DNA of 62,476 bases, from the NCBI GenBank assembly GCA_004431415.1, contig QPMI01000696.1, positions 1 through 62,476 of the forward strand, given 5' to 3'. The notes below the pieces were generated by a model that saw only the letters and a program-made list of their open reading frames with translations, was not told where the DNA came from and did not search any database. A program made the translations under genes and the position numbers. Positions within the stretch are counted from its first letter, which is position 1. The number at the start of each line of letters is the position of its first letter. Of this stretch, positions 5,185 to 51,787 are shown in pieces. Source of the DNA: Cyanophora paradoxa CCMP329 (Eukaryota; Plantae; Glaucophyta).

Positions 5185-6104
5185 CTAGAGAAGGTGGGAG
5201 GCGTCGGGCTCGGGGAAGGCCAAGGCCAAGTCGCCGCCAAAGGCGGAGAAGTCGAGGCCGCCGTCGCCGTCCACAGCCGCCGCGTCGTCCGCCGCCACGC
5301 CGCCCTCCTGCCGGCGCGTCAGCCGTCCGGGGCGCCGCGGCGGGGCGCGGCCGTCCGGGTCGGGGGGCGCACGTCAAAGGCGAGGCCGCTGTCGACGCCG
5401 TTGGCGTCGACGCCGTCGGCCGAGTAGGCCTGGACCTCGTCGTCCACCTGGAACAATTTCATCGTGGAGGAGCGGTGGAATCCCATCTTGGGCTTCGAAG
5501 TCGTGCTGCGGTGGCGCCCGAAGAGGCTGCGGCCGCGGCTGGAGGAGCCCCCGCTGCTGGGGCGCGCGCTGTTCCAGATGCCGCGGGAGCCGCCACCCAG
5601 GATGCCGCCACCCAGGAGGCCGCCCAGGAAGCCGCCGGACTTCTGCGGGTTGCTCGGCGCGAACGGGCCCTTCTCGTAGCCATGCTGCTTGCCGTAGTAT
5701 TTGTTGTAATCGATGCCTAGAGCGAATACGAAGGGGCGCGGCAGGGTCAGCGGTCCGTTTCGCGGGGCCGGCGCGGTGAGAGGCGAGGTCGCGCACGACC
5801 GCTCTGCTCCTTGTGCACGAGAGCTTCGATCTGGTTCGGTGTCATGTACGTCGGCTCGCCGGTGAAAGGGTGCATCCTGCGCCGGATCAAGTCATGATCA
5901 GCAGATCTACAGGTCACAAAGCACGCGGGCAGAGGGCGAATTCGAATTCGAAGCGAACCGCATGCCCGGCATGCTCGGATGATCGTACTTGTTGCCGGTG
6001 TACTTGTGGCCGCCATAGGTAGCCGCGATGCGGTCTTCCGCCGCGTCCAGCGAGTCGTAGCGCCACGAGTCGCGACCGGGCCGGGAGTCGAAGCTACCGT
6101 CCAT
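5185..6104 (-). CDS. Unknown protein, acidic-tail family member A
   Basis: Four GT-AG exons splice in frame: MDGSFDSRPG...GIDYNKYYGKQHGYEKGPF...GGFLGGLLGGG...VDDEVQAYSADGVDANGVDSGLAFD|EGGVAADD...PEPDASHLL*. An upstream exon is possible. Confidence 0.7.
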
Positions 6105-8615
6105 GTCTGGATCCGAGGTTGGCGACGACGATGTCAGTGCACGCGGGAAGGCTAGGGCGGCGGAGATCCCACGCAGCGCCTACCACTGTAGTATAGTACG
6201 TATACGGATGGCCTGACGCGGCGTGTGCCCACTGCCCAGTCCCCACTGAGTCGCACTGACTCTCAGTGTCCGACGGTCCCCAGTGAGTCCCCACTGACTC
6301 CCCAGTGACTCCCCACTGCCCAGTACTAGTACTACTAGTAGTACTGTAGTAGTACAGTGGCAGTACTAGCTGGCACTGCTGGCACTGCCCACCACGGCCA
6401 GTGTGGCAGTGCCCACAGGGCCCCACACTGTGACACACTGACGTACCGCGGTATTTTGCTCTCAGAGTCTATGGCCAAGTGGCGGGCCGGGCGCCGGGTT
6501 TTAAATTAAAACGCGGTAACTTACTAGGTTTTTGAGGCTGTACATGTGCAGCTGCGCCGTGCGCACTGCGGCCGGGCACCATGCGCGACACATGCGCATG
6601 CCATGATGCGCATGCATAACATGAATCCGCTGATGATCGATATCCTGATCATGATGCCATGTCCGGTGATCAGATCAGATCCGGTGATCAGCCGCGCGGC
6701 CCGCGCCTGTTCTGGGAAAGAAAAGTCTGGTCAAAACGGACTATCGAAAATACAAAAAGAAAAAAGCGCGTCACCGTCCGATCACCGTCCTGGTCCGTCC
6801 ATTCCAAAAAAACCCATCTGCATATATATATAACAGCATGGGCCACGAAATTAATATTGGCACGAATCCGGCGACTCGACGTACGGCGACTCGTCGGCGA
6901 GTCACTGAGAGCTCGAGTAACTGAGCAGTGATCTTAGAACCTTAAATACTATTATAATGCATTATAATAATGTTTATTACTGGATATCAATATTAAACGG
7001 GACACTGATCATGAGTCGACGGCCGCGCGCCGGGCCCCGGGCCCGGCGGGCGACTCGCCGACTCGCCGAGTCGCCGATCGCGACTCGCGAGTCGGCGAAT
7101 TCGAATTCGAATTCCGAGTCGAATTCGAATTAATATTCGAACTACCAGTGTCTACCACGGAGTCTATCGCTACGTACGTATACGGTACTCCGGTACTAGG
7201 TACGTACTACGGTAGTACGTTACTGTACGTACCGTATCGCGTAGTACCCCGCGCAACTGCCCAACGACGAAGGCTCGAGCCTCGAGGCTCGAGCTCGACG
7301 GACCCAGGAGACTCGCCTAAGAGTCGACGTCGGAATTTTGACCCGGTAATTGATCGAAATTCGGAATTATACAGAAACAAATTAAACCTCCGAGGCTCAT
7401 GAAAAAAACACTGATGAAGATCAAGTAGAACCGTTGATTCGAATTCGGCGTTGAAGCGTGGAGTCCGACGTACGGTCGCCGTTGACTATTAATTTTTTAT
7501 ATTGCAATTGGTACAATAACATGATAACCAGGTACTACTAGGCTATACAGTCTATACGCCGCTACTAGGCTAGTATACGGGTAACGCCGTGACGTGATGC
7601 GGGCCATGCGGCAGTGCAGCGGGCCAGCGGCACTGATGCCATGACGAATCATTGATGATGCATTATGTGCGGTGATGTTTCACGTACGCGACGACTACGC
7701 GTACGGCTTTTGCACGGTACTAGGGTAGCCTGACGGCTGCCTGAGTCATCGATATCGATACTAGTAGCCTTAAATTTGCACGGTCGCTGGGCCCGCGCCG
7801 GCCCCGCGGTAGCCTTTTGCACGGTAGCTTGTGCACGTCACGGTGCACGTGGGGGTGGTTATCGAAATATAACATATATAACATATGGTGCCATAATAAT
7901 AATATAAAATAATGGTGATCTTTAGCACGGTATACCGACGATAATACCGTATACGTACTAGGCGGGAGCCTCGGAGTCTAGGCCTAGCTATAATATATAG
8001 TATAGGCTGGCGCTAGTCACACTGACTCATCAGTAAGTGCTGGGCCACTGCGCTAGGCTGCCAGCCGCTGCGCAGCAGTTGCAATCCAACATGTCAGCGC
8101 TAGCGCGCCGCCTCATGATCAGGCCCGCCTGCAGGCTGGCCATGGCTGCGCATGCGTTGCTGGTGCCGGCGCCGGCGACGTCCGACGGCCGACGGGCCGG
8201 AGCGCGCGGCGCTCCAACGTTAACGTTCGCACTACTTCGCAGTACACACGCGCGCGGCATCGAAGCACGCGTACGTATATCCCCTCAAACCTCTCAGTAT
8301 CTAGCTATAGCTATATATAGTATTCGTGGTCCCGAGTCCCGGGTCCCGAACTCCCGGCCGCGGGCCGACGGACACGCAAATTCGCAGCACACGCCGCGGC
8401 GCGCCTATACGTTTATATATACATACACATATATAGTGCGAGTCCTGGCCATGGAGCCCCGGCCGCGGCGGACGGACGGCGCATCTGCATGGATGCGCAG
8501 CTAATTGCGGTCTGCTTTGCAGATCTGTAGCTAAAGCCTCGGAGCTACGAGCCAGTCGAAGAACCATTCGGAATTCACTAAACGCCAAATCCGAAGCAAA
8601 CCAGGCGCGCTATCG

Positions 8616-11600
8616 ATGGGTCTCTTCAAAAAGCTAAAGCGGGTGAGTTCGGCCGCGGCCTCATCATCGCGCGTATAGCCTGCCGGCGCCAACCGCCCCA
8701 TCTAGATCTGAAGTGCACACTCGCAGAAATTTAAGAAGGTTGGCAAGAAGATTAAGGGCGGGCTGAAGAAGGTGATTTCCTGAGTGCATCTGCTCGCGGA
8801 TCGCGTTATCTCTGAGAGTGTGCGCGTGCAGGTTGGGAAAGGATTACAGAAGGGCGTGAAAGCAGTCGGAAAGGGAGTTTCCATCGCCATGAAGAAGACT
8901 GGTATCGCAAAGGTCCGAATCTTTCAAGCTCCGGAGCCCCCTTTCATTTCCTGTCCCCTCCCCTCCCCCCCCCCCCCCCCCCCCCCCACCCCCCTTCCCG
9001 GCTCACCTCGACGCGACCGGCCACATGCGCATGCACAGCTATCGATTCAACGGTTGGAAGGGCACGTCATATATCTGTATATAGGCCGCTGTGTATTAAT
9101 ATCAATGCGATGCGACGTCCAATTATCCAGACACAAAACCTTCTCGAGCTCCTCCTTCTCCCCCGGGCCCCCAACCCCCCTCCCCGCACCCTCATGATCA
9201 TGCATATGATCAGCTGGACCGTCCCGGTCATTCTACCTGAGCTCATTCGAAACCCCCCTCCTCCGCAGGTCCTCAAGGTCGTTGGGAAGATCCCCGTCAT
9301 CGGCGGTGCGCGTGACACGGGTACCCCGCCAGCACGCGTTCTCACGCGGCGGCGCAGGCCTGGCCAAGTCGGTCACGGGCGTCGTGAAATCCATGCGCTC
9401 GGGCAACGTCAAGGGCATCTTCAAGCACGGCTTCTCCCTCGCCACCAGCTTCGGCCCCGGCGGTCTCATCAAGAACGCCGTCGTCGGCGCCGTGAAGGGT
9501 GCCCCCTGCTTTCATTTGCGATCGGTTTCCCCGCCGCGCCCCCTCCGACCCCGCGCGACGTACAGCGGGGGTCAAGGCGGGGGTCAAGGCCGGCGCGAGG
9601 GCCGGCGCGAAGAAGATAGCCTCCCGCAGCGCGAAGAAGGTCGGATCGAAGGTGCGCCCCTCCCAATTCCAATCCCCCCGCCCTGCAGCTGATCGCGAGG
9701 ACCCCGCGGCCGTCTCTAATTATTTAATATGAATTTTGCTCCCTCAGACCGCCCAGAATTCGAAGGCCGGCTCAAAATGGGGCAAGGCCGGCTCAAAATG
9801 GGGCAAGGTCGGAGGCAAGTTCGCGAAGAGCAAGCTGAGCGGCAAGTTTGCTAAAGGCAAGCTGAGTTCGAAGGGCGGCGTGAGCAAGCTCGCGGGCAAG
9901 GCCAAGCCCCTCTGGGCCAAGCTCACCGGCGCCGGCCGCTCCAAGCCCGGCTTCAAGCCCGGCAAGTTCAGCGGCACGTTTGGGCGTGCGGCGAAGGCAG
10001 GCCTCAAGGGGGCGGCGAAGCAGGGCTTGGGCGCGGCAAAAGGGTACGCGCAGGAGCAGGCCGCCGCGCGCTTCATGGGAGAGGTCCGGTCGCCATCCCC
10101 GCGGCTCCAGATCCCGGCTTGCTGCCTGTGACCTGACTCTCGGCTCTGCGCAGCAGCACGACGGCTCCAACGGGTGGGCCCAGGGTCAGAAGGGGTTTGC
10201 GGAGGAGCAAGCCCCGGGCCAGCAGCCGCCGCAGGAGGAGCTGGCGCCGGGCCAGCAGCCCCCGCAGGAGGAGCTGGCGCCGGGCCAGCAGCCCCCGCAG
10301 GAGGAGCTGGCGCCGGGCCAGCAGCTGCCGCAGGAGGAGCTGGCGCCGGGCCAGCAGCCCCCGCAGGAGGAGCTGGCGCCGGGCCAGCAGCTGCCGCAGG
10401 AGGAGCTGGCGCCGGGCCAGCAGCCCCCGCAGGAGGAGCTGGCGCCGGGCCAGCAGCAACCGCAGGAGAAGCTGGCTCCGGGCCAGCAGCCGCCGCAGGA
10501 GGAGCTGGCGTCGGGCCAGCAGCCCCCGCAGGAGGAGCTGGGGCCGGGCCAGCAGCCCCCGCAGGAGGAGCTGGCGCCGGGCCAGCAGCCCCCGCAGGAG
10601 GAGCTGGCGCCGGGCCAGCAGCCCCCGCAGGAGGAGCTGGCGCCGGGCCAGCAGCCCCCGCAGGAGGAGCTGGCGCCGGGCCAGCCGCCGCCGCAGGAGG
10701 AGCTGGCGCCGGGCCAGCAGCCCCCGCAGGAGGAGCTGGCGCCGGGCCAGCAGCCCCCGCAGGAGGAGCTGGCGCCGGGCCAGCAGCCCCCGCAGGAGGA
10801 GCTGGCGCCGGGCCAGCAGCCCCCGCAGGAGGAGCTGGCGCCGGGCCAGCAGCCCCCGCGGGAGGAGCTGGGGCCGGGCCAGCCGCCGCCGCAGGAGGAG
10901 CTGGCTCCGGGCCAGCAGCCCCCGCAGGAGGAGCTGGGGCCGGGCCAGCCGCCGCCGCAGGAGGAGCTGGCGCCGGGCCAGCAGCCCCCGCAGGAGGAGC
11001 TGGCGCCGGGCCAGCAGCCCCCGCAGGAGGAGCTGGCTCCGGGCCAGCAGCCCCCGCAGGAGGAGCTGGCGCCGGGCCAGCAGCCCCCGCAGGAGGAGCT
11101 GGCTCCGGGCCAGCAGCCCCCGCAGGAGGAGCTGGCGCCGGGCCAGCAGCCGCCGCAGGAGGAGCTGGCGCCGGGCCAGCAGCTGCAGCCCCCGCAGGAG
11201 TCCAACGCTCGCGAGCCCACTGCCGTGGGCCGGGACTGGGATCCAGAGAGCGCCCGGGCCGGAGGCGAGCAGCAGGGCTGGGGCGGGATGCGCGGCCACG
11301 GCGAACCGCAGGAGAGCAGCAGGCCGAACGACGACCACGGCAGCGTGCGTTCGCCACCCGCCAGCTGCAGGAGCCCCCGGCGCGCGGGGCGGCGGCTGAC
11401 AGATTAGACATCGGTTCGTGCGCAGCGCGAGCGGCTGATGTGGCGGAACGTCGACACGGGGCGGGCGGCGGTGCACCTGGCGGAGGAGGTGGCTCCCCGC
11501 GTCGAGGAGTACGACGCGGCGGGGGCGCTCGCGGCCGGCCCGGAGGAGGCCGGCGCTGGGCCGGCGGCGGGTGCGGAGGGGTACGAGCGGTACAGCGCGG

Positions 11601-11845
11601 CGGGGCTGGAGGAGCTGGATGCGGGGGCGGGGGCGGGGGCGGGGGCGGGGGCGGACGAGGGGGCCCACGGCCCCGGCGAGCTCGACGGGCACTCGGTGCG
11701 GCGCGGGCCCCCGCGGGCCTCCCCAGCGCCCCCCCGGCCCTGGAGCCGGCTGCTGAACTTGGGTCTGACGCGAGCACAGGAGGGGGACATGTTCGGCTAC
11801 GTACACGCCCACAGCGCCAGCCATTTACTCCTCGCCCTCTGCTGA
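8616..11845 (+). CDS. Unknown protein, family member B: cationic amphipathic Lys/Gly N-terminus, Gln/Glu/Pro repeat, acidic tail
   Basis: Phase-compatible exons give MGLFKKLKR|[15 protein letters not shown]|[15 protein letters not shown]...([11 protein letters not shown])n...[16 protein letters not shown]...|[21 protein letters not shown]. Confidence 0.75.
10214..11200 (+). repeat. Coding 33-bp minisatellite, 29 complete units plus a partial one, encoding [11 protein letters not shown]
   Basis: Unit ccgggccagcagcccccgcaggaggagctggcg is repeated head to tail from 10214 to 11170 with few substitutions and no spacers. Confidence 0.95.
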
Positions 11846-12880
11846 CTCCGCGCACGCAAGGAAATTGTCTTTCATTTACTTCTCCTTGATCAAGCTGCAA
11901 AGAGCGCCAGATAGATCGCGAAGGCCGAGGCCGTTGCGGATGCGCCGGGAGAGATGCGCCCAATGAATATATATGCTAGGCCTATATATATATATAGCTA
12001 GCGTTGGTGGTCTCTCTGGTCCGGCTGCGGGAGAGCGGAGGCTGCGGGAGAGCGGAGTCCGCGGCGGTCAGTGCACGTGCCACGGTGTATGTAGCTGTAC
12101 GCCTTGCAATTAATTTATTAATATTGGGGCGGGAGAAAGAAGCGCTGGGACCGCGAATCTCGATCGATATCGACGCCTAGGCCCAGCTATAGGCCTATAT
12201 ATAAAGCTACCACTAGACCGGGGGGGGCGCATTGCAAGCTGCAAGCATTGAGCTGCATGCGCACAAGCGCCCGCGATTCGAATTCGTCCAGATCTGGATC
12301 CGGAGGCCTAGGCCCTGAGGCCCTGAGGGGCGCCGGCGGCGCGGGATCGGGAGGGGGTATCGGAGGCCGAAGCATGTGCATGCGCAGGGGGCCCGCGGCC
12401 GGGAGATCTATAGCTAGCTATATAGATGCCATATAGCATATGCATCGCGTTCAACGTGCAACCGATCCACCGGACCACCTGCCCGGGGTATATCGAAAGC
12501 AGGCCAAGGGCGCGGGAAGCTTAAGGGGGCACGAGAAATTACGTGTACGTATAAACTTGAAACGCGTACGCCTGCAAACGACGCGGCCCTCGATCTCGGC
12601 GACCCGTCCGAGGCTCCGGATCCGTGCTAGCTCGCCCAAGCTTGAGGCCCCAGCTGCAGGCCGGGCGGCGGGCCCGGCCGGGCCCGCCGGCGCCGGCCCC
12701 CCGGTCGCCGCCGGGGCCGGCCCGGGCGGGGCCCCTGGGCCCTGGGCCGCCGGGGCCGATGAGTCGGCGATGATATCGATCTATATACTGATGTTAACGT
12801 TGGACTCGGACTCTTCATGCTTAAGCTTGCATTATAAATTTTACAACTCTCAGGTCATTATACTAACTATACAAAGCTCA

Positions 12881-13500
12881 AAGCTCGTAGATTGAAGGCC
12901 CCGTCTTCAAAGTCACGGCCCGGATCAGCTGCAAACCGCAAGCTGGGATCTATAGCTAGCACAGCTGGTGGTGCACGGTCACGCCGTCCGTGCAAGCGTG
13001 CGCGCCGTGCCCGCCCTCCTGCGGCGCCGTTGAGCCGACGGCCGGGGTACGGCATTCCGAGGCGGGGTACGGCGCACCACGGCGGAGTAGTTCTCATCGA
13101 CAAGGCCCATGTCGACGTCGTGGTCGGCATCGGCTGCCAAGGCGTCCGACGGTCAGGTCGGCCGCGGACCGGCGCGGGGCGCCGCGCTCGAGCGCACCAG
13201 CATCGAAGGCGCCGCCCGCGCCGCCGTCGTCGCCTACCGAGTTGACGTCCGCATCGGCCTGCGAGTCGTCAGAGTCGGAGCTGCGGATCCGGAGGCGTGC
13301 AATCGAGTTATGAAGCGCACGAAAGCGGAGTAGGGGGTATAGGACTCGTCCGCCGGCGCCCCATTGGGGTCGTCTTCGGCGACGATCATCTTCTACGGGC
13401 AGGGAAGCGGCGTCAGAAGGCAACAAGGAGGGCTGGAGGGCGGGGTGCGCCGCACCTCCTGGTCCTGATGCTCGTTCTGCTGCGGCTCGTCCTGCTGCGG
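12881..13500. repeat. ~620-bp near-identical duplicate of 16731-17350 (3' exons, introns and 3' UTR of genes C and D)
   Basis: Direct comparison shows only a handful of substitutions. The ORF track gives identical translations for 12892..13245 and 16742..17095. Confidence 0.95.
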
Positions 13501-14771
13501 CTCGTTCTGCTGCTGCTGGCCATGGTTGTTCTTGATGAAGCTCAGGCCTGACTTGGCGCGGCTCTTCATAAAGGAGCCTCTTCCTTGCTTGATGGACGTT
13601 AAGGGCAGCTTAAACTTGAATTGCTTCGTGGCGCCTCTCGATATTCCTCTACCCCCGAACTTGTTATTGACTTTCTGCTGAGCGAATGCGCCCCCCTGCG
13701 CCCAAATTCAGTCGGCCGGCGGACAGACCGTAGCGCGCGCGGGCCAACCTTTTCAATCCCGAAGCTGAGTGCCTTCGAGGCTATCCCCTTGAGAGTCCCC
13801 CCGCCTTTCGATCTCTCAAGGCGCGCTTGCAGTTTCTGCTGTAAGGTTTCGCTCCCCTGCGCGCGCAGTCAGTCGGCTGGCAGGCACGGCAAGGCGGGGG
13901 CCGACCCTCTCCACTCCGTAGCTCAATCCTTCCTTCATAGCTTTTTTCCCAGCCTCTTTCGCCATCTGTGCCGTGTTCGCGTTAGTTCCGGCGTTTATAA
14001 TTAAGCGCGCGATATCGATCTGATCACATAATCATGATGCATATGGAATCCGCACCCCGCCTAGCGTCGATGAAGCGGCCCTCTGCGCGAACTGCCCCAC
14101 GGCCGAAGAACCGACTCTTGACGCGAGTTGGCCCAGCGCGGAGGACGCCATCGAGCTCGAGACCGAGCTGGCCTGCGCAGAAAAGACAACAGATCTAGAT
14201 GAGAAGCTTGTAATTAAGACGTTGAGCGGGGCGGAGCGTCAGATACACGCACGGCAGACGACACGGTGCCCGCAACGGAGCCAGCCATCGAGCCGACCTG
14301 GGATCGAAAGATTATATTCAATTGCAATGATTTCTCGATTTCTCGAACGTGGCTCACAGTCGACGCAACGGAGCCAGCGACGGAGCCGACCTGGAATCGA
14401 GGGGTGAGATGCCAGGCGGAACGTGGATGCGCATGCGGTGATCGTAACATGGCGCACAGCGGACGCCGCGGAGCCAGCGGCGGAGGCGACCTGGGATCGA
14501 GGAGTGAGTGTTGCGTTCGGAGGGCTAGGAAAAGCGGGGACAGCACGAACAGTGGACAAAGCTGAGCCCGCGACGCCCGCGACTGTGCTCGCAGCCGACG
14601 TGGCCTGCGAGGGCAAAAGTTGAGCTCGAGGGCCGTCCGACTCCGAGCAAGCACAATGATATCGCGCACCGCCCCGGCGGCGGCAGAGGCGACCTGCGCG
14701 AAAGGATGGATGTCGGTCGGAGATGCACCACGGACGCGCGCGGGCGGACGCACACTGAGGACGGGACCCAT
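12956..14771 (-). CDS. Unknown protein, family member C (Ala/Ser/Gly N-terminus, basic middle, Gln-rich and acidic tail)
   Basis: MGPVLS followed by micro-exons VASAAAGA, VASAASTVAGVAGSALST, VGSVAGSVAST..., then QQDEPQQNEHQDQE|KMIVAEDD...YTPYSAF|ADAD...ENYSAV|EGGHGAHACTDGVTVHHQLC*. Confidence 0.7.
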
Positions 14772-15189
14772 CGTTGCTCAGCAGAACGCGGCCCAAGAAC
14801 GTTAACAAGTGCACGTATACGTATTCTGGCTGAGCTGCCTAAGCGTCCCGAACATGTGAGCTCGAGCAGCTCTGCAGCTGGCCGGCGCTGTGCGGTGGCA
14901 GCTCTGCCCCTAGCTATAGACCTGCAGCTACGTATACTCTGCAGTAGCTACTGGTACTGCGGTAGTGTGCAAAGCTGCGGCTGCGCCGCGGTGCCACGCG
15001 TACTACGTATACGGTACGGTGCGCGAATTCCGAATACTCAGTACGCAGCTTCGAAGCTTGGGCCGCTGGCTCCGCTGCCCGCCGTATCATACGCCACACG
15101 AGTGAGTCGGAGTGACACGACGTCGACGTCGACCGTCGGAGACGGTCGACGTCGGACCCACACCTACCGTCACTCGGCGTGTAACACTT

Positions 15190-15577
15190 ATATTTACTGC
15201 GCCACAAAAAAACAATTTCTGCGCCGGTTACTAAGTTAGCGCTTTAATTATACTGCGCTACCAAATTATAACTACAGTCTACATGCAGCGCGCGCTGCCA
15301 ATTGCAAATTACCGCGCTAAAATGTTTTAATTTGTAACGCAGTAATTGTTTTTTTGGTGAATTACCGGCCACAGCCTCTAGTGTAATTTGGTAGCGCGGT
15401 TTGATGCGCCGGTATATCTCGAGCTCACCCCGGCCGTTGGCGAGTAAATAATTCATTAATATTTTCCACGACGATGGAAGTTAACGTTAACGTTATCATA
15501 TGCATGGAAGGCGGTAATATTAATTTGGCAGCGCAGTAAATTTTTTTTTTTGGTGAATTACCGGCCACAGTCTCTAG
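15190..15577. repeat. AT-rich repeat, possible non-autonomous transposon end
   Basis: Direct repeat (t)n ggtgaattaccggccacag(c/t)ctctag at ~15350-15380 and ~15545-15577. The word atttactgcgc and its complement gcgcagtaaat recur in both orientations. Confidence 0.4.
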
Positions 15578-16805
15578 ACACCAGCACTGCGGGGGCTGCC
15601 CAGGGGGCATAAAGACAAAAAAGCAAAATAACTAAGACAAGAGCACGAAGAAAGATAAGACAAAGAGCCAAAATCGACAATAAAAAAGGAAAGACACAGA
15701 GCTCGAGACAGATCGATAGCGAGAAGAGACGATAAATCGAGCAGATCTAGGGACAGAGGATAACTGACACGAAGAAGAGCCAGAGCTAGAGATACCATCA
15801 ATATCAGAAGGAATTACATCACTAAGAAGCGGGGGACAAAATTGAGAAAGATAAATAACAGGAAGAAGACAAGTAAGAGGAACAACAAGACGACATGGAG
15901 GCGGAGGCGAAGCAGGACGATGCGAAAGGGCAGAGCTACGGCACGAGGTCGAGGAGGACACAGGAGGCGGAGCAGGCGGATCAAGAGCAGGCAAAAGGAC
16001 AGTCAAAGGAATCACTAAAGCCGGCCAGGGTCGAGGCGGGCAATCGAACTGCAAACGACGGCGAACAACAGGTCGAGCACGAGGACTATAGCTAGTATTG
16101 AAACTAACTCTAGCATCAACACTACGATCAGAATCCGAACCAGACCGAACTAAACTAGAAGACGAAGAAGTACGCCGGCGCCGGCGGGATACGATCGCGA
16201 CCAGCGAAGCAGAAGACGCAGTAAATTTTAAGCGCAAATCGGGCCCAAACATTTGGAACGCGCTAATTTAATTCTGACGCCGCGGCGCGGAATTTGCATG
16301 CAAGCTCGCCGTGGCCCGGCCGACGCCTTCTCGGCCCTATAGCTATAGCTACCCCCCCTCCGCCCCCCCCTCCGCCCCGCCAAGGCTATCGAGGGCGGGA
16401 AAGACGTTACAGCTAGGAAGCTTAAGTCTAAATAAAGTCTACGGAGAGCCCCTCCCGCCCCCCCCCCCCCTTCCCCCCTCCCCCCCCTCCCCCCGCCGTC
16501 GCCGTCAGCACCGGGCAGGCTAGCCCCCGCGGGTGCCCCGGTCGGCTGGGTCTCGTTCTTGTACATCTACAAGAAAACTTTTAAATTGGCTGTCTGACGC
16601 TATGGTTCAAGGAAAACGAAAAAAGGTCCTTAAGCTTGAAGTCTAAACATGTACAGAGAAGGTCTTTCGAAGAATGATGAAGGTCAATCTGAATAAAGAA
16701 GTCCCATATGCATCTACGTATACGTATACAAAGCTCGTAGATTGAAGGCCCCGTCCTCAAAGTCACGGCCCGGATCAGCTGCAAACCGCAAGCTGGGATC
16801 TATAG

Positions 16806-18193
16806 CTAGCACAGCTGGTGGTGCGCGGTCACGCCGTCCGTGCAAGCGTGCGCGCCGTGCCCGCCCTCCTGCGGCGCCGTTGAGCCGACGGCCGGGGTAC
16901 GGCATTCCGAGGCGGGGTACGGCGCACCACGGCGGAGTAGTTCTCATCGACAAGGCCCATGTCGACGTCGTGGTCGGCATCGGCTGCCAGGGCGTCCGAC
17001 GGTCAGGTCGGCCGCGGACCGGCGCGGGGCGCCGCGCTCGAGCGCACCAGCATCGAAGGCGCCGCCCGCGCCGCCGTCGTCGCCTACCGAGTTGACGTCC
17101 GCATCTGCCTGCGAGTCGTCAGAGTCGGAGCTGCGGATCCGGAGGCGTGCAATCGAGTTATGAAGCGCACGAAAGCGGAGTAGGGGGTATAGGACTCGTC
17201 CGCCGGCGCCCCATTGGGGTCGTCTTCGGCGACGATCATCTTCTACGGGCAGGGAAGCGGCGTCAGAAGGCAACAAGGAGGGCTGGAGGGCGGGGCGCGC
17301 CGCACCTCCTCGTCCTGATGCTCGTTCTGCTGCGGCTCGTCTTGCTGCGGCTGGCCATCCACTGGCGTCTGCTTCTGGGTTTGCTGGTCGAGGACTCGGA
17401 ATTTGAAGGCCTGCCTCGTCACGGCTTTCCTCGGTCCTGGACCCCCCTTCGCAGTCTTCGGAGGTACCGTCCCTTTCGAACTCATGAAGCGGTTCAGGCC
17501 CGACGGGACTTTATTTGGTCCGGCTGCAGCCGCGCCCCCCTGCGCCCAAAGTCAGTCGGCTGGCAGGCACCGCAAGGCGCGGGCTCACCTTGGCCGCTAT
17601 CTGGGCCAGAGCGGAATTCGAAGGGCCAGCTAATTTTGGCGCAGGCTGGTCCGGGGCGGGAGCCTGTCCTTCCTTCAAGCCTGCTAATTTTCCCAAGGCC
17701 GGATTGACCTTGCCAGCGAGGCTGCTGCCCTGCACCGAAACGATGAATGAGACTGAGAGCGGAGCTGACAATAGCATGCACGCATGCGCACGATCGTTCT
17801 ACTCCCTCCCCCTCCTCCTTTACTACTTCCTACTTTCTGTGCGATGAATTGCGCCTGGGAGAACAGGTCGTTGAACTCGAGAGGGAAGTGATTCCGGGCG
17901 GAACATAGCGTGCACGCACAGTAGACAACGCGGTAGACACGCCAGTCGAGACTAGAGTGGATGTCGAGATTCCGCCCACAGCCCCCGCGACCGCGCTCCC
18001 GGCCGCGCTGGCCTGCGCAGGCGGGAATCAGCTGCAGGGTCCCGGGGCCGTTCCGGGTGGAGGCAAGAGCTGCAGCTGAGCTCACCGCTGCTCCGGCCAT
18101 CGCAAAACCTGCCCCGACCGCTCCCGCGGCCGCCGACGCGGCGGAGGAGGCAGCAGAGGCAGCGACGGCCGCGATGGCTAGAATGGGACCCAT
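16806..18193 (-). CDS. Unknown protein, family member D (paralogue of C)
   Basis: [36 protein letters not shown]..., a basic middle, then PQQDEPQQNEHQDEE and the same 3' exons as C, ending GVTAHHQLC*. Confidence 0.7.
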
Positions 18194-19874
18194 GGCTTAA
18201 GGATTCAAAGCTGCTGTCGCGATGTCCGACGCGGCGGCGGGCCGGCGGGCTCAGCGGCTTCGTGCAAGAAAGCGCCTAGAGCTGAACGCTAACGAGCTGA
18301 ACGTAGAGCTGAACGTGCAAGAGGCGGGGGCCGCGGGCGGATCGGGGGCGCCCTAGGCCTGGTTTGCCGACTTCTAGCTGAAGGCTGCGGCTTGGCGGCG
18401 AGGACGTGGCTGATGAGTCTTAGGCTCTTAGCTATAGATCTAGAGCTGCGCATGCGGCGGCGAGGCCCCTGCTGCCCCTCACGGGTGCGGGCGGACGTCG
18501 ACCAGGGAATCCGGGATATCGATCGGCGGGTCTGGCGGCCGGGCCCGGGGGCGACAGCGCCGGCAGGTGGTCGATGCCACTGACTCGATGGTCGTACTAC
18601 GGTACGGCGTACGCGCGTACCGTAGTACGGAACGGTACGGTACCGGTAACCGCGGCCGGTATCATGATCATCGGGTATTACTAAGTTACTACTAGGCTAT
18701 ATATATATATATATGATTAGTGGGTGGCACTGGGTGCATCATGGCCAGTGATGGCATCATGATAATGATAAAAATGATAATGATGTGATATCACATTTTG
18801 ATATCATGATACGGGACCCCCCCTCTATCACGCTCATCATAATGGTGACATCACGACCCCTCAACTCGCGTCTTTCGCCTTTCCAAGTGCTCTGTACAGT
18901 GCTATATCACACATAAACAGCTTCTGGTGATGTTAAGAATGTTATTAGAGGCTCTGGAGAGCCTCTGGCCGCCTCGGCAGTACTATGCATGTACCCCCAG
19001 GTCGTCACCCTGGGTGGATTTCTCATGATCTCTTGTCATTCGGACCCCCAGATGCTTTAACCCAGCATTGGTATGCTTAAGAACACGATTCTGCTCCAAA
19101 ACAGCAGGTTCTACAGCGCAGAAAGGGCACTGAGGTGTCTGATGACGCGTCCGTACCCCCTTCCCTGTGATATCAAAATGATCATCATGATGGTGATAAT
19201 GATGTGATAATGATGACGATTTTGGGGGACCTATCATGATGACATCACTGATCATGGCATCGCAATGATGGCATGCCATGATGGCATGATATCGATGATG
19301 CGCACCCCGGCGGCACCCGGCCCTGATACTACCCGCCGGTACCCGGTAGTCTCGATGAAGGCCCCGGGCCCTTCATGACTGAAGTTCCGAGTCAAGTTCC
19401 GACTCGGCGAAATTAACCGAAATTAAGATACGTAAAAAAAAGCTTGATCAAAACGCGTACGCGTACCGTAGTACTAGTACGCGCGTTGATGCGTATACGT
19501 AATTAATATTTATTTTTCAAGTCAATCGCTTATAATTAAAGCTTTGACCAGCTAGCCGCTGAGTCGGCGCTGAGTCGCTGACTCATGATCAGTGAGCTCA
19601 TGCAAGCTGGCCCAGTGGTTAACTGATGATGATGGCTGGCATATGCATTGGCTGGTTAACTGAGCTCGGCGATTGATGCCAGTGCCACCGTGGCCAGTTG
19701 GTGATGCCACGGCCCAAGGCCCACGGTCCACGGAACCCGGGTCCGTGGCACTCCGTGCCAGTGCACGGATGCCCATGCCATGAATCCCATGCCATGATGA
19801 TGGCCATTGCTTAATTAATATTAGGCAGCTTAGTGCTGGCGCCGGGCCCGCGGCGGGCACTGCAGGCGCTACTA

Positions 19875-20089
19875 CTGTAGGACGGCTTAAATTGCCGTGG
19901 TGAAAAATTGCCGAATTCGCCCAAACCGGAATTGCCGTGGTGATAAATTGCCGAATCCAGACATTCGCTCTATGGGGGCCTCGGAAACTCTCTAAACCCC
20001 ACAACATTGCCGTCCCTTAAAATTGCCGAATTCGGCCTCTCGGCAATATACGGCAAAATAAAACGACGGCTAAAAAAGCCGTCCTACAG
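19875..20089. mobile_element. MITE (Tc1/mariner-type, TA target duplication)
   Basis: TA|CTGTAGGACGGCTT...AAGCCGTCCTACAG|TA; 215 bp; internal aaattgccg repeats. Confidence 0.8.
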
Positions 20090-20139
20090 TATACTAGTCA
20101 GTGTAGTAGTCACTGAGTATACTACTAACTTAGTAAGTA

Positions 20140-20366
20140 CTGTAGGACGGCTTTTTTAGCCGTCGTTTTATTTTGCCGTAAATTGCCGAGAGGCCGAATT
20201 CGGCAATTTTAAGGGACGGCAATGTTGCTGGGGGGGTAGGGCTAACCGGCCGCTTTTGTATGGCGCCATAGAGTGAATGTCTGGATTCGGCAATTTATCA
20301 CCACGGCAATTCCGGTTTGGGCGAATTCGGCAATTTTTCACCACGGCAATTTAAGCCGTCCTACAG
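20140..20366. mobile_element. Second copy of the same MITE family, inverted orientation
   Basis: Same TIR and TA flanks. It is the reverse complement of 19875-20089 except for a short divergent centre. Confidence 0.8.
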
Positions 20367-21163
20367 TAGTGTAGTACTATGGTAGTCCTCGGCGACTCCT
20401 CGCTGACTCCTCTCGGTGACCCGGGTCACGGGCCGGGTGACGCCTGGCAGGGCCTAAAAACTTGAACTTCGGAAACAAATTTAAAACTTGAACTTCGGAA
20501 AGCTATAGCTAGCCGCTGAGCGTCACGGCCGCGGCGTGCAGCCGCGGCCGCTCGAGCTCCGACCGCGAGGCTCGCCTGCAGCAGCAGTGCAGCTACTGTA
20601 CTAGCCTAGTAGCGGCTACCGGCCCACGGGCCAGTGCCGGCCCTGCCGGGCGGTGCGCGAGGCACCGCGACCGCGGCGCCTACGTACGCGTATACAAGAC
20701 TCGTGCAGGCTGGTGCAGCCCCGCGACTTGCGGTCCGACCCGGCCAGTGCGGCCACCTGCGGCCGGCCCGCCGCTGCCAGGCTGGTACGCGCGCGCGCAG
20801 AGTCGCCGCAGAGTACTAGTCAGTGCAGAGTCACTGCAGACTCGCAAGTCGGTGGCACGATCATCGGATTGTCCAGCCTGGAAAGCCTGCGCATGCAGCT
20901 CAGCAGCGACTGTCATCCACTGAGTCCATGTCATCGGATCGCATACGTATCTCGTAATCAGCGACTCATACTGTAGCCTAGTATCAGTCTGCATGCAGCC
21001 TGGCGGGGCCGGGAGGCCTTGGCCGCTGGCGGCGAGCCGGCGCCCGATCGAGAGGTTCGACCGTACGCGTATACATGCGCGCGGGCGTTCACGAACTTTT
21101 CTCCAGGCGCTAACGAGCGGCAAACGCGCGCGCAGGTCAGCGTCCATCGAGTTTCCAGAGTAC

Positions 21164-21747
21164 ATGTACACGAACGGCAGGAAGCAGTGTCCAGTGAGAT
21201 GTGTCCGGGCAGCCGTAGTCGCGGCCACCACGGTCCTCTTGCTCGCCGTCGCCGCCGCAATCGTGTTCGCATTCGGCGTCGGCGGCAGTTCGGGGGTGCC
21301 GGGGCTCCGCCAGTCGCGACCGCCGCAGGCAAGCCGGGCCGCCCCTGGCTCTGATATGGATCCCGAGCTCGTCAACCGAGCCACGGCCGCCGCCGTTGCT
21401 AACGGCGGCATCTCCGTCAGCCTGCTGCTCCCTGCCGGAGACCTGATGGTCTCGATTCGAGCCAACATATCCATGCCGCCCAGCAGCGAACCGTCCGCGT
21501 CCAAATATTTCTGCCGGGCTTACCGTCTGGCGGGCACGCACCTCACCAGCCTCTACCACGCCACAAGACTCCACGGTCGGGTCCTGTCGCGCCACCTCCA
21601 CCACGTGCGATATTGATATTAATGAATATTATATGCAGCGCCTCCGCGACTCACGCGAACGACACTGACGGCCGCCGGTTCCTGCAGATGCTTGTGTTCG
21701 GTTGCCTTGCACCGATCGAGCAGTGGCGCTACGAGCGGTATTAGTGC

Positions 21748-21778
<31 letters not shown>

Positions 21779-23543
21779 AGATTGAGCTCCCCTTCCCCTC
21801 TTCCTGACTGAGAAAGATCATCGGATCGCGTTTCAGCCCATGCGCAGAGATGGAAGACGTCTCCTGCTGGCGAGCGCTGTACTTCCTCTGCCTTTTCCAC
21901 TCGTTTTTAACACTTCGTTCTGTTTTTAAAAGGACGATTATTGGGGGTACGGCGGACGTTTCTGTCGACTCGGACTTTTACCCCACGGCGGGTTCGCCGA
22001 TCTCAAACCCGGGCCTGTCTGCCCTCAATGCCCATCCCCGCCTGTCGTGCAGGGATGCCATTCGGAGTAGGAGCCTACGGAGACGCGTACGTTGCGGTCA
22101 TCCAGCAGTGGCACTGTGAGCAGCACTAGTACTGATGCCACTCTCCTCCGAAATTAAACTTTGTCTTTACTCGGCGGCAGATACCTACACGCAGAACGAG
22201 GTTGGCTTGCTGGACCATAGCGGTGCTCCCCATGGCCAACGCCGCAGCATGCGGCGGGGCGGCCTTGGGCCCCGTCTAACGTCTGGCCCCCCAATGCACA
22301 GGAGTGGATTTAATCCTCACGCCACGCTTGCGACCCCACAGCGTTGGCTCTATCGGCCTCTGGCGCGCGACATGCCTATCCGCATATTAACCCTTAAAAA
22401 ACATTACTGATTTGCGGATGTCTTCAGGTACCCGCACAAATATCACGCGGTCAACGGGACAGCAATCGCGGCAGAGGTGTCCGCAGGAATCATCCCCCCG
22501 CTTCCCAGGGCCATCATCGAAGCCTCCGTGTGTCATAAACCCCGGCTCCGTCTTCTACCTGCTCATCCCAAAAGCTAGCGCTGGTTCCTTCTAAACGATA
22601 CACCCCCGATCCCTCCCGCCCGCCCTGCCGTTGAGTACGTCGGTGTGTATTTGCTGGGCGCTGTTGCTCGCTTCCAGTTGAACCTTCTGAACGGGCGCGC
22701 AGTGACGTGTCCTCCCCTGGGCCTTGGTCCCCTAGGCTATGGTTCCACCGACTCCGTGAGCGACCTACTGACTCCCTCGCACCCCAGCCCACATCCCGCC
22801 AAACTAAGCCCATTATTCAGTTGGAATATGCTGTGCCTCCCGAGGGGGCCAACATCACCCACGTCTGGCCCCGTGCGCTGTCTCCCACTGCGCTTCCGGC
22901 GCAACTACGTATACTCGCCCCCGTAACTCGCCTAACAGACATGCACCTCACCGGATCGAGAATCTGGGCCGAGCTTTACAGGCTGGACACGAGCAACGAC
23001 GGCGACGGTGAGCCTTCGTCATTCATTCAAACGCATCTGGCGACCCGCTTGCGTGGCGCGTCTATGCGCAGGACGGTGGCAATACGTGCGGGAGGTGTAC
23101 CGCTGGGACTCTTATTTCTTTCATGGGCAGGTGCACCGACTCTGTATTGCTGCGATGTTATAATCCTGAGCTTGTCCGTGGTAGCGTTTTTTTGAGCTTC
23201 CGGATCCGATCTTGATTCTTCCCACGGACCGGCTGGTCCTTCATTGCGAGTGAGTGGGTGCCTCTTGAGCTTCCGAGGATTGACCCCCCTTGCCAGATTT
23301 AACTCAATGAATCGGACCAAGCCGACCGTCCTCGGAACAGGCATCCTCGATGAGATGTGTACGATATTCTTTCAGACGGTCCCGCGGCTCCCATTCGCAG
23401 CGGTAGAGCCCCTGGCAAAGGCGCGGGGGGTCGACCCCCTCATTGCGGTCGGCATGGGATCGGTTAGTTTCGGCGGGGTCGTCGGCTGGCCCCAGCTCGA
23501 ACCCCTCCTCGTCGACCGGCGCCCCGTCGCCGGGCGCAGATAA
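21164..23543 (+). CDS. Copper type II ascorbate-dependent monooxygenase (DBH/MOXD1/PHM superfamily), N-terminal membrane anchor
   Basis: Hydrophobic anchor AAVVAATTVLLLAVAAAIVFAFG; YFCRAY; LHHV (CuH His pair); GMPFG...VIQQWH|YTY...DHSG (third CuH His); HMHLTG (CuM HxH); ILDEMC (CuM Met). Start uncertain. Confidence 0.8.
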
Positions 23544-24257
23544 AATCCAGTCCCCTTAAGCTTGATTGCAAATTGTATGCTTCGCGCAGTTTCATTTTTC
23601 CGAAGTTCCGGTGCTATTGATGCTTTTTTCCTAGATCGCACTGCTGCTGCTTATTTCTCATCGCACTGCTGCCTGACAAATGATTCAGTACTGTGATTGT
23701 GACGATAACGCTCGTTTAGCGCAGCTGCAGGATGGATGCGTATGCAGGGCCGCCACGCATCTGAATCGAGGCTGGGTCACAAGGGCTGGGGAAATTCACA
23801 TATTTAATTTGCATTCGCCGAGTCGTGCGATCGATCCGCGCGCATTCGCGCGGGGTACCGGTTCAGAAAGAGGGGGTAGGGCTCGATTGGTGGGGGGGTC
23901 ATCCGGCAGTGTGCCAGATTTGCACACTGCCGGAGCCGGGGCCGGGCCATATGCATTTGGCGCGTGCACCGAAAGCAGCTTAAACTCCATAAGTTGCGGT
24001 GCGCCGTCGCGGCGCATGCGCATGCATATACCATCTCCGGGGCTCTCCATGGCCACCAGCTGAAGTGCAAACCGAGCACGCAATTGAAGCATGTCGGTTT
24101 TCAGACCCGAAGCTACAAACTTGCAATTGAAAAAGGAGGGAAATATTGAAGGATCCCGGAGAGGGAAAGAGGGAAAGCCCGAAGTGTACAGCAGAACGCG
24201 CGGGGGGAAGGAGGGGAGGCGGGGGGGGGGGGGGGGGGGGGGGGGGGATTATGGAAT

Positions 24258-25472
24258 CTACAGGAGATTGTGCCCTGCGTCGCCGGGGTACGATGCCGCG
24301 AAGGCGTAATCTTCGTACCCGTCCGCCCCAGCCACGTCGAGCACCCCGTACGCGTCAGCGCCCGCCTCGGCATCATCCTGGTCGTTATTGAGAGGTTCAG
24401 CTGAGAGAAAAATGCCTGGCCTCGGACGCACGAAAAAAGGTGCATCGGCCTGCAGCTGGTCGAGCTGCGACGCGTCGACGGTGTAGGTGTACGTGTCGAG
24501 CATCTGGGGCTGCGTGCATGACTGTAAATCGCGAGAGCCTTCACGAATTGCAAGCGAAGGGTACCGGTACCGCGGCCGCCGATATAGCTGCCTTCGGAAT
24601 ATTGGCGACGGACTTCAACCAACCCTCTGCGATCCAGTTCGGGCCCTCCGGGTAGTTCGACGCCAGGGGCAGGTGTCCCTGGCAGCGGTCTGACGTTCGG
24701 CTATGCGCGGTCAGGGTCGCATAATCTAGAGAGCAGACCGTGTAGCAGCCGGGCTTCAGGCGATCAGTGCCGTCCGTGGCGAAGCGCGACCCTTTCGGGC
24801 AGCACATGTACGTTTTCTATGGAGAAGAGGTTAGCGGTTTATGCGCAAAAACGTAAAGATCTAGGCAACTGCGCCGAGAAGAAGAGATTGCTATTAATAT
24901 TGCACCTTGGCGTACGAGAAGAGAACCTTCTTCTGGGCGAGCCAGCCCTTGGCCATGTCGGGGGTGCCGACAAACCAGTTCGACCAACCGGGCCTCGTGT
25001 AGAGAAACACGGGCTGGCCGTCCATACGCACCGGGGAGACGACCTATCGCGTGGTCGCGTGTAAGCGGCGGCGCTCATGTGCACGGGCAGCGCTAGCGCG
25101 GCGGCGGCCGCGGGCAGCGGGCGGCGCACGGCCACTGGAGTGTCGAGCGGGGTGCCATCCGGCGCTGTGTGATCAGTGCAGCCGCTCTTCTCTACGTTGG
25201 GGGCAAGTCTTGTAATCTCTGCGTGCCGCCAGTGCGTCAGGGGTGAACGAAAACGGCAAGGGCCAGAGCACGTCCGACGGTCGCACTCTGGATGACCGTG
25301 GCGAGCGACTGGCTTCTGGGGCCGTCCGTGAGCTGCGCGGCGGTGCCACCGAGTCAGCTGTGAGAGGCGTCGGCTGCAGCTTGCGGCGCACGTAATCCAG
25401 GTCATGCGGCGACTTCAGCTTATTCTCCTCGACCGCCTTCACGAATTTGAGATACATGGCCGGGCGCTGCAT
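24258..25472 (-). CDS. Unknown protein, family member E (globular-looking N-terminal domain with Cys/Trp, acidic tail)
   Basis: Spliced: MQRPAMYLKFVKAVEENK...GWSNWFVG...YMCCPKG...PQMLDTYTYTVDASQLD...DAYGVLDVAGADGYEDYAFAASYPGDAGHNLL*. Confidence 0.65.
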
Positions 25473-25732
25473 GGTCGCGTGTATGCCGGTATGGTACTAG
25501 GTGCAACGAGAACGTGAGACCGGCCGCGGCCCGGCGGACTCGGGACGCGTACGCGTGCCACCGTGCCACGGTACGGACCGTACGGTGGGCCCGGGCCGGG
25601 TACGGTGGGGCCGGGTGGGCCGCAGAAGCTTTTAAGCCGCTTGCCGCAGTGCCGGCGAGTTGCCGGCCGGGCGACTCGGCGAGCTCGAGTTGCCGCCGCT
25701 CACTAAGTCAGCGGTTCAACGGTTGTGCTTTA

Positions 25733-25968
25733 CTGGAGAGCTAGAAATATTTAGTGGGTTGCATATTTATAGTACTAAAAGTTTTTGGGCGATCTACTAA
25801 ATATTTCCCGCCTGCCGATCGCGAGAATTTGTAGGGGTAGCCCCGTCTCCGCCATACAAAAGCCCTGCCAAGACCGACCTACTAAAGATTTACGTATACC
25901 AGCCGCTAAAGTGGCAGTTTTGGCGAAATACTAATTATTTTCCTGTACTAAATAAACTAGTTCTCCAG
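25733..25968. mobile_element. MITE with TA flanks
   Basis: TA|CTGGAGAGCTAG...CTAGTTCTCCAG|TA (one mismatch). It shares the internal word gccatacaaaagc with the MITE at 20140 (reverse strand). Confidence 0.65.
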
Positions 25969-26941
25969 TAATTTAAAATTTTCATGCAAGCGGCGCGGGC
26001 TGCGCGGCGCTGCAGCCAGTGATGTTATTCCAAATTAACCGAAAAACTGCCCATTCCGGGAATGATTCCTGGAATATTCCTAGTAATTATAAGATCATCG
26101 GATTCCGAATTCTTTATTGTTTTGTTTCTAGAATTTTAATCCCCGGGGGCCGGGGACCGCGGCCGGGCCCGTATGATTTTCTATCCGATGATCCGATGAT
26201 CATACCGTAGTACACGCGTACCGCGCACCCGGCCCATACATGAACCACGGTAACTATAGTACCGTGACGTGCTACTAGTATATGATCGCGGCGCCATCGC
26301 GCCAGCCCGGCGGCGAGGCTTTGGACTCCGGGAAATCATTATATTTCTAATTATTTGATATCGGATCCGGCCGGCCGGCGCCAGTCTCGCCGGCGAGTGA
26401 CCGCGAGTCGCCGCTAGATCGAGGGCAACGATCATGAAAAAAAGCTTGATCAAAACGGTTTGATAAAGATTGCCTGCACTGCGGCATGCAGCTGCCGCAG
26501 TGCCGGGCGGCCCGGGCCACTGCCGGCCCGGCCCGGGCCAGCGCTAGCCGCTGATCATGATCGCTGCCATGGCGGAACATGCCCGCGGCCGCGGCCGGCG
26601 GACTCGGCGGAACATGCGGCAATATTAATTTAAACTTTGAAAATAAATTGCAAAGCGCGGCTCCCCAGGCCCGGAGTCCGGCGCGGCGGCACAGCTGCAT
26701 GCGCAGTACTGTACACAGTGTACAGTACAGCTGCCCGGTAGTGACACAGCGGCACAGCGGCGCGGCGTGACTACTAGTAGTAGCCGCTGAGCGTAACTAG
26801 CGTTCCGCCGCTCTTACAGCCGGCGCCGTCCAGCCTGGCAGCTCAGCGGCTTGCAAGCCAGCAGCTGCGACGCCACGCTAGCCCGGAGCCGTTGCAAGCC
26901 GTGTCGAAGTCAAGCTAACCTGCAGCTGTGCAGCAGCCAAT

Positions 26942-27853
26942 ATGGGTGGCAAGGTGCGACGAGCCTCTCGAGCTCGTTCGAGCGCTTCTTACCGCGGCCG
27001 CCTGACCAAAGCACAGCCGTCAGTCCCGAAGCCGCCGCCGCCGCCACAGTTGAAATTTGGGTGCGCATGCATGAAGGAGAAGGCGGGCTGTTTGTGGTCA
27101 GTTACGTATATATTGCGCAGTTTCATTTGCATGCGAGACACGGCATGCACGACGCAAGTCAACCCACAAATCATCTTCGACTCTACGGTCCCTGTCAACT
27201 GCCCCCTCGACCAGTACCGCACGACGCCGTACCACGAGCAGTACCTCGCGGACTGCAACAACCAGAGGGAAATGCTGGCGAAGTGTTGGGAGGCCGGTGG
27301 CAAAGCGGTCGCGCAGTACGAATACTGCAATGGTGGCTACAAGCCGGTGCTGTCCCAAGTCCGCTCCAACTGCAACACGCTCGTCGAGGAGAGCGGGCGC
27401 ATTGGCCAGAGGCCCGGCAAGCATACGGCCGCGTGCGATCGGAACGGAAAGCCGATAGACCCAGAGTCTCTCAAGCCCAAGCTTAAGCCCGCTGCCAGCA
27501 AGCCCGGCGGCCGCCCTCGCGGCAGGCCCGTCCGGACGATCCGCGGCAGGCCCAGAGACCTCGACGACAACCTTCAAGCCGTGCGTCCCGCGCGCGCCCG
27601 CCGCCCTTGCCCCTTTGAATCCGACCTCGCGCTGCAGCACGACAACGACGACGGGATCGTGCCGTACGCGGTGGACGGGGACGGCGACGCGGCGGCGGAC
27701 GCGGCCGATGTCGACGTGCAGCTCGGCGGCCCCGCCGCCGACTTTGAGGGCGCCGCCGCGGACGACCTCGACGCGAGCGCCGCCGCCGTCTTCGGCGCCG
27801 AGGCCGCCCTGGACACCGACGGCGGCCCCCTGCACGCCCACGCCCTCCTCTAG
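26942..27853 (+). CDS. Unknown protein, family member F (Cys-rich domain, basic linker, acidic tail)
   Basis: MGGK|PSVPKPPPPPQLKFG, then an 8-Cys region, then GRPRGRP, then |HDNDDGIVPYAVDGDGDAAAD...DTDGGPLHAHALL*. Confidence 0.7.
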   Translation: MGGKVRRASRARSSASYRGRLTKAQPSVPKPPPPPQLKFGCACMKEKAGCLWSVTYILRSFICMRDTACTTQVNPQIIFDSTVPVNCPLDQYRTTPYHEQYLADCNNQREMLAKCWEAGGKAVAQYEYCNGGYKPVLSQVRSNCNTLVEESGRIGQRPGKHTAACDRNGKPIDPESLKPKLKPAASKPGGRPRGRPVRTIRGRPRDLDDNLQAVRPARARRPCPFESDLALQHDNDDGIVPYAVDGDGDAAADAADVDVQLGGPAADFEGAAADDLDASAAAVFGAEAALDTDGGPLHAHALL

Positions 27854-33629: not shown

Positions 33630-33706
33630 TGTGCCCCCCCCGGCGCCGCGCCCCGTGCACGTGTACCCTTCGGGCGCCGCGTTCAAATGCGAGTCGGCGC
33701 CGCTCC

Positions 33707-34981: not shown

Positions 34982-35020
34982 CGTCGAGAAGTCGCTCGTA
35001 CCCCAAATTGATCTCTTGGA

Positions 35021-41925: not shown

Positions 41926-41959
<34 letters not shown>

Positions 41960-46372: not shown

Positions 46373-46375
46373 CTC

Positions 46376-51727: not shown

Positions 51728-51787
51728 ACAAAACGATTAATGATTGATTTGTATATGTAATTTTTATAGCCTTACTGGAAATGGTGT

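Follow-up and report, generated by a model that had tools for sequence, protein, structure and literature searches.

In class II defensins such as NaD1, an acidic C-terminal propeptide detoxifies the protein and is sufficient for vacuolar targeting (PMC3922462), and in frog antimicrobial peptides (AMPs) the charges of peptide and propiece loosely offset each other (PMC7073735). The Grt/Igr proteins of Tetrahymena combine a variable N-terminal part with a common C-terminal module that is sufficient for targeting to mucocysts (PMC3824020), and Cyanophora has mucocysts too (PMC6704402). In Braarudosphaera bigelowii, unrelated cargoes for the nitroplast bear a C-terminal extension, uTP, that is believed to direct them after translation and to be cleaved off (PMC12176269). 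Here we describe six genes, A to F, from a stretch of 62,476 nucleotides (the window) of Cyanophora paradoxa CCMP329, GenBank contig QPMI01000696.1. The proteins differ in their N-terminal bodies and carry an acidic tail that is nearly free of Lys and Arg (0-1 in the last 60 residues) and has His followed by Leu-Leu or Leu-Cys at its tip. The presence of this terminal motif in all six is more than chance.

The original prediction, made from the letters of the window, had all six proteins end in H-x-L-[L/C]. Only C, D, E and F have this strict form. The end of A is H-L-L, and in B the last five residues of A are followed by four more. When the last 40 residues were shuffled, a looser terminal pattern, H-x(0-4)-L-[LC], gave p=0.0004-0.009 per gene and a product of ~4e-14 over five independent genes; the pattern was defined post hoc, after the data had been inspected, and the margin is large. 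The motif thus stands far above the shuffled C-termini against which the prediction was to be held. In the host part of the window (1-44000), just 2 of 992 other stop-terminated frames end this way, as do none of the readable neighbouring gene ends. The Tyr-small-small motif that had been noticed in the tails is indeed in every one of them (shuffle product 4e-6, likewise post hoc). Beyond these motifs, the tails have a common composition (Asp/Ala/Gly-rich, low complexity) more than a common sequence. Composition-matched shuffles are exceeded by three tail pairs, B-E (p=0.002), B-F (p=0.02) and A-F (p=0.03), and not by the remaining 7 of 10. A short recognition signal would be expected to behave in this way, with the terminal motif kept and the remainder of the tail scarcely alignable. 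The bodies had been described as unrelated apart from C and D, and this holds: C-D are related (p=0.002), B-C perhaps (p=0.03), and the others are not. Two subgroups can be recognized, one of A, E and F with Leu-Leu ends and one of B, C and D, which share a Met-Gly start, an Ala/Gly/Lys-rich body, a Gln/Glu/Pro linker and a Leu-Cys end.

All six genes are confirmed as real; four of them (A, D, E and F) match public annotation, and B is partly supported. We built the models from coordinates, each is open from ATG to stop, and the six stop-terminated ends lie where they had been predicted. The window is part of C. paradoxa contig tig00021759, as shown by the match of the 26942-27853 open reading frame (ORF) to EukProt tig00021759_g23424.t1. 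Our models of F and D equal g23424.t1 and g23421.t1 exactly, the A model differs from g23418.t1 at one residue, and the E model differs from g23423.t2 at two internal junctions only, with the tail unaffected. The public numbering leaves one number free for each of B, C and a neighbouring gene, G, which are thus probably g23419, g23420 and g23422. The family had been called invisible in the ORF track, which is not the case: F appears there as a 303-aa ORF, and A, D, E and F are in the public proteome, where they are unnamed.

The RNA check that had been suggested for the splicing was made with RNA contigs of four runs from four studies, compared with positions 11200-16650. All 13 predicted introns of C are exact in these contigs, with GT-AG ends, and in two runs of two studies a single 1339-nt contig spans the whole gene. 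The tail introns of D are also present, so that its tail is spliced like that of C, and contigs with the D allele, a D-specific upstream exon and D's own 3' flank show that D is transcribed. RNA cover of B is weak; one contig begins at the edge of the last exon (11779), and the last junctions are not seen in the RNA contigs. These junctions, and gene A, which lies outside the positions compared, are the points that would favour the shared ends being an artefact of the chosen splice sites, which we find scarcely credible: the RNA contigs refute it for C and D, A, D, E and F appear in an independent annotation, and the end of B is the same with or without removal of the last intron. Further along, 26-33% of the sequence words of 22500-28000 occur in 14 probable RNA runs. 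Since a single gene would account for at most 22% (E and F together for 21-42%), transcription must involve two or more of E, F and G. The E/F/G words are almost absent from four same-species RNA-like runs, and two of these come from a study whose other run contains 27%; such differences hint at condition-dependent expression or at another library type.

The tail is a module. The last intron is in phase 0 in all six genes, as are most introns of B, C and D, and the last exon begins Glu-Gly in A, B, C and D, as predicted, with Asp-Asp in E and His-Asp in F. Between C and D, a block holding the tail exons is nearly identical, and outside it the two genes match over only 50-60 bp at the DNA level, their bodies having diverged. 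On the sequences, this shows that a tail has recently been copied as a module, via gene conversion or exon shuffling, although the identity of the block is by itself no proof of selection. The predicted family with a modular tail is thus supported by a motif beyond chance, by phase-0 tail exons and by a tail copied between diverged bodies.

Could the likeness of the six nonetheless be partly historical or convergent? In that case two subfamilies, A/E/F ending Leu-Leu and B/C/D with a Gln/Glu/Pro linker ending Leu-Cys, would have arisen by local duplication and gene conversion, and their tails would lack one common function. The seven unremarkable tail pairs and the variation in the exact terminal motif speak for this, as does the C/D identity, which takes in introns and untranslated region (UTR) and so reflects recent copying and not selection. 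However, the last residues are kept where everything upstream has diverged, as neutral descent would not predict, and both the five terminal-region residues common to A and B and a 12-residue stretch common to B and E cross the subfamily border. We consider this account distinctly unlikely.

Charge is segregated in all six proteins, with a basic body and an acidic tail (p<=0.005 versus shuffles). When each protein is cut at the end of its basic block (charges in the table), the ranks of body and tail charge agree perfectly (permutation p=0.008, n=5 independent genes). Net charge lies between -2 and -15 in all six, a narrow range that is independent of the position of the cut, and the most basic body, that of B, bears an expanded acidic 11-residue repeat of ~30 copies. 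This body/tail balance may be taken as indirect support for one option of the original prediction, an inhibitory propiece. The other options named there, a sorting signal, extrusome loading, unconventional secretion and a RiPP-like follower, are speculative. The bodies of B and C are also more amphipathic than their own shuffles (hydrophobic moment z=4.3 and 2.8). Another suggested term, polymorphic effector, could plausibly apply to B, C and D, judging by their cationic, amphipathic character. The bodies of A, E and F give no functional clue. In E, the body exons 25043-24906 and 24678-24592 have a common short Asn-Trp...Gly-Trp-Leu pattern, which suggests an internal duplication.

Signal peptides were judged by a hydropathy heuristic only. 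By this measure, A, B, E and F have no signal-like N-terminus, and with a maximal 19-mer Kyte-Doolittle (KD) value of 0.7-1.4 they have no transmembrane helix; the corresponding value is 1.4-1.8 in C and D. These two open with 87 and 73 uncharged residues, respectively, and their likeness to a signal is weak in C and borderline in D, where the best hydrophobic 8-mer has a KD of 3.0 and there is no charged n-region. A weak signal or anchor is possible for D on this evidence. The claim that none of the six has a clear cleavable signal peptide thus stands for A, B, E and F and has to be softened for C and especially D. In-frame stops lie one or two codons upstream of the starts of C and D, and because the stop before C is two codons from the start, C has no missing leader.

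Relatives outside the locus were not found by any search. The long ORF of F retrieved only F itself from 5.8 billion proteins, the post-repeat part of B had no match, and neither A, D, E and F nor the exons of B and C matched Pfam, NCBIfam or PHROGs. The PDB sequences, the ESM Atlas and the metagenome, viral, GTDB and phage collections likewise gave no match. The tail-profile scan that had been proposed recovered only its own inputs (A, F, E and D with a second profile), by a method that is weak on low-complexity tails; such searches are insensitive to diverged tails of this kind, and their blanks are no measure of family size. The literature searched includes no paper naming the contig or the six genes, although the supplement of the genome paper lists another gene of contig tig00021759, and it describes no glaucophyte mucocyst cargo or secreted defence protein family. 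That no described family had been recognized in these proteins thus agrees with the profile, sequence and literature searches.

How might such proteins work? Our tentative preference is that A to F are precursors, in which the tail would neutralise a cationic cargo and also be read by a common receptor or protease. Exon shuffling would have joined a variable, positively charged body, the cargo, to a portable acidic tail. The acidic part would bind and neutralise the basic body, so that a membrane-active or nucleic-acid-binding cargo is kept quiet in the producing cell, and the conserved free C-terminus would be recognised by a single partner common to all six, either a receptor or a protease. 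This partner would route the proteins post-translationally to a storage or export compartment, for which mucocysts are a candidate, and/or remove the tail and free the cargo. By means of amphipathic helices, the cargoes of B, C and D might then attack membranes, with defence or competition as the simplest purpose. Among working systems, class II defensins, whose acidic propeptide has both a detoxifying and a targeting role, offer the nearest model.

Several observations weigh against a precursor role. The charge correlation depends on the cut, and a cut at the charge maximum favours it; under another automatic rule, which assigned the B repeat to the body, rho was 0.7 (p=0.12). The bodies of A, E and F are not amphipathic relative to shuffles, nor is that of D, and a conserved cleavage motif was not found at the body/tail junction. 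A tail profile run against 1.84 billion representatives returned A and F together with a bacterial repeat protein of no relation to them, and no further members, and no promoter word was found that distinguishes the six genes from controls. Without a clear signal peptide, moreover, the route would be one undescribed for Cyanophora paradoxa. It is tempting to extend the proposal to a signal-peptide-independent route, by which the tail would both neutralise a large shuffled repertoire of cationic and Cys-rich orphan cargo and address it to a storage or secretory organelle such as the mucocyst. We regard this extension as unlikely. If true, such a leaderless addressing tail would be categorically new: Archaeplastida would gain a protein-sorting signal of a new kind and, with it, a candidate effector system. 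Few such routes are known in algae, and a sorting signal borne on unrelated cargoes would join them as a leaderless, C-terminal one. If the tail is only a neutralising propiece, the genes would still encode cationic proteins, possibly membrane-active, that have not been described before.

The N-termini fit another account, in which the proteins stay intracellular and uncut as largely disordered basic/acidic scaffolds or membrane-surface proteins, at the cortex, alveolar plates, lipid surfaces or nucleic-acid condensates. The acidic tail would then serve for auto-regulation or as a spacer, and a common partner would be docked by way of the terminal motif. A, B, E and F, without signal peptides, suit this picture, and the Met-Gly starts of B, C, D and F might be acylated. 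In C, the 11-residue Ala/Ser/Val exons resemble lipid-surface helices, and the Cys that ends B, C and D might carry a lipid or, jointly with His residues close by, bind metal. AlphaFold single-sequence predictions reached a predicted local distance difference test (pLDDT) score of 45-47, a low confidence that is compatible with disorder. However, the 8 Cys of F and 4 of E suggest disulfides and an oxidising compartment, and the bodies are too dissimilar for one structural role. Nor are the proteins epiplastins, which have a medial Val-rich domain of acid-base dyads with VPV motifs (PMC6212826), a domain that A to F lack. Altogether, we consider uncut intracellular proteins a doubtful explanation, to be kept in view beside the precursor one. 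The epiplastin/articulin reading itself was rejected on the six models read, in which charges are segregated and not arranged in dyads.

The gene set might also be seen as a cluster like those for ribosomally synthesised and post-translationally modified peptides (RiPPs), with the tail as follower for tailoring enzymes and with G, an acyltransferase-3 and an ABC-B exporter serving modification and export. The arrangement invites this, since G, Acyl_transf_3 (30.6-32.0 kb) and the ABC transporter (1-3.9 kb) interrupt or flank the six genes. G is a copper monooxygenase; its last exon matches Pfam Cu2_monoox_C with E=0.0015, short of the curated cut-off, and all the copper-site motifs (His-His, His-x-His and D-E-M-C) can be read from the exons, together with an N-terminal membrane segment. 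By analogy with its family, G probably faces the secretory lumen. Being membrane-anchored and, by family precedent, active in that lumen, it would have leaderless substrates beyond its reach, and its motifs look DBH-like, not peptide-amidating. The bodies, at 160-240 aa, contain no short repeated cores, and there is no common promoter motif. We consider a RiPP-like system very unlikely.

Features of the window, with net charges in parentheses; body and tail are divided at the end of the basic block
Feature	Positions	Strand	Structure	Body and linker	Tail	C-terminal end	Support
Gene A (g23418)	5185..6104	-	4 exons, 229-230 aa	Tyr/Gly- then Ser/Arg-rich (+10)	acidic (-16)	H-L-L	public annotation agrees
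Gene B (probably g23419)	8616..11845	+	10 exons in model, 758 aa	Lys/Gly-rich, amphipathic (+62)	long acidic repeat and acidic tail (-77 together)	H-L-L-L-A-L-C	
33-bp tandem repeat of B	10201..11183	+	~30 copies of an 11-aa Glu/Gln/Pro unit		repeat charge about -53 to -60		
Gene C (probably g23420)	12956..14771	-	14 exons, 327 aa	87 uncharged Ala/Ser/Gly/Val residues on small phase-0 exons; basic middle (+21); Gln/Glu linker	acidic (-23)	H-Q-L-C	13/13 introns in RNA contigs
Tail block of C	12879..13502	-	four tail exons, their introns, 76 nt of 3' UTR				
Gene D (g23421)	16806..18193	-	9 exons, 296 aa	Ala/Gly/Ser-rich start; basic middle (+16)	same as C's (-24)	H-Q-L-C	identical to public protein
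Tail block of D	16729..17352	-	624 bp, 98.9% identical to C block				
Gene E (g23423)	24258..25472	-	8 exons, 241-247 aa	contains Trp/Tyr/Cys (+7)	acidic (-13)	H-N-L-L	
Gene F (g23424)	26942..27853	+	4 exons, 243 aa	8-Cys core, Lys/Arg/Pro linker (+13)	acidic (-20), on one phase-0 exon	H-A-L-L	identical to public protein
Gene G (probably g23422)	21164..23543	+	membrane-anchored copper monooxygenase, DBH/MOXD1/PHM family, between D and E		none		
ABC-B type exporter, 3' part	1-3900	+	upstream of cluster				
Multicopy element	15540-16220		A-rich, between C and D				
Self-reverse-complement element	19871-20370		~500 bp, 87% identity, between D and G				
Glycosyltransferase-61-like gene (by eye)	28300-29600	-	possibly broken				
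Acyltransferase-3 family gene	30570-32100	+	downstream of cluster				Pfam E=2e-11
Housekeeping block (by eye)	32770-43000		compact				
Polinton-like element (by eye)	44100-62476		AT-rich, intronless insertion				

The surroundings of the six genes are mixed. The window is GC-rich with many introns of 50-100 nt up to ~44 kb and AT-rich beyond. G lies head-to-head with D and tail-to-tail with E, and its two domains seem to be separated by an insertion. The ABC-B exporter has a long extension after the ATPase domain, which by eye resembles a cyclic-nucleotide-binding domain and is not confirmed by profile. The glycosyltransferase-61-like gene stands beside the acyltransferase-3 gene. Between D and G, the self-reverse-complement element is possibly a foldback or miniature inverted-repeat transposable element (MITE)-like insertion. 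The element between C and D draws many RNA contigs with sequence variants and loose ends, and is probably a transcribed repeat or retroposon end. The housekeeping block holds two plastid-targeted genes (one PAM68-like), a ChaC-like gene and a DEAH helicase, none with the tail. The Polinton-like element has integrase-, PolB-, helicase- and capsid-like ORFs by eye, and 9-bp repeats at 44632 and 51861. An origin of A to F from this adjacent element is not indicated; its ORFs are AT-rich and intronless and have other ends.

Several short C-terminal or near-terminal signals, namely the acidic-cluster dileucine and Tyr-based motifs, PTS1, HDEL/KDEL and CaaX, contain Leu-Leu, Tyr or Cys, some of them after acidic residues. 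No consensus among them is shared by the six proteins, which are neither transmembrane nor clearly luminal, and the PTS1, HDEL, CaaX and adaptor dileucine readings were rejected on the sequences. PTS1 is a terminal tripeptide of a small residue, a basic residue and Leu or Met in a basic context, whereas the tails end H-L-L, A-L-C, Q-L-C, N-L-L or A-L-L in an acidic one. Glu is penultimate in none of the six, as HDEL/KDEL would have it, and the Cys that CaaX places four from the end is the last residue in B, C and D, with no end Cys in A, E and F. As to the adaptor dileucines ([DE]xxxL[LI], DxxLL), in which Asp/Glu precedes Leu-Leu at a fixed distance in the cytosolic tail of membrane proteins, only A fits [DE]xxxLL, and A, B, E and F are the proteins without a transmembrane helix.

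The larger precursor systems come closer. Like class II defensins and AMP precursors, all six proteins place a basic cargo ahead of an acidic C-terminal segment. However, those precursors have endoplasmic reticulum signal peptides and one conserved small fold, whereas the bodies of A to F, 160-240 aa long, are mostly unrelated and have no clear signal peptide and no defensin or AMP Pfam match. Grt/Igr proteins share with A to F the plan of a variable N-terminal part and a common C-terminal module, in organisms that likewise have mucocysts. Their module, a folded beta/gamma-crystallin domain that sortilin reads in the secretory lumen, contrasts with the low-complexity acidic tail of A to F, which bears a short motif at its tip and matches nothing in Pfam. 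The uTP proteins offer the possible parallel of unrelated cargoes with a common C-terminal extension in an alga. There, alignable conserved motifs sit on recognisable enzymes bound for an endosymbiont-derived organelle, whereas A to F have orphan cargoes and a tail that can scarcely be aligned (3 of 10 pairs beat shuffles), and its profile finds its own inputs only. Judged by their sequences, A to F would thus belong to none of these three systems. As they stand, they are a real orphan family with an unusual architecture, undescribed until now, whose logic resembles that of known precursor designs.

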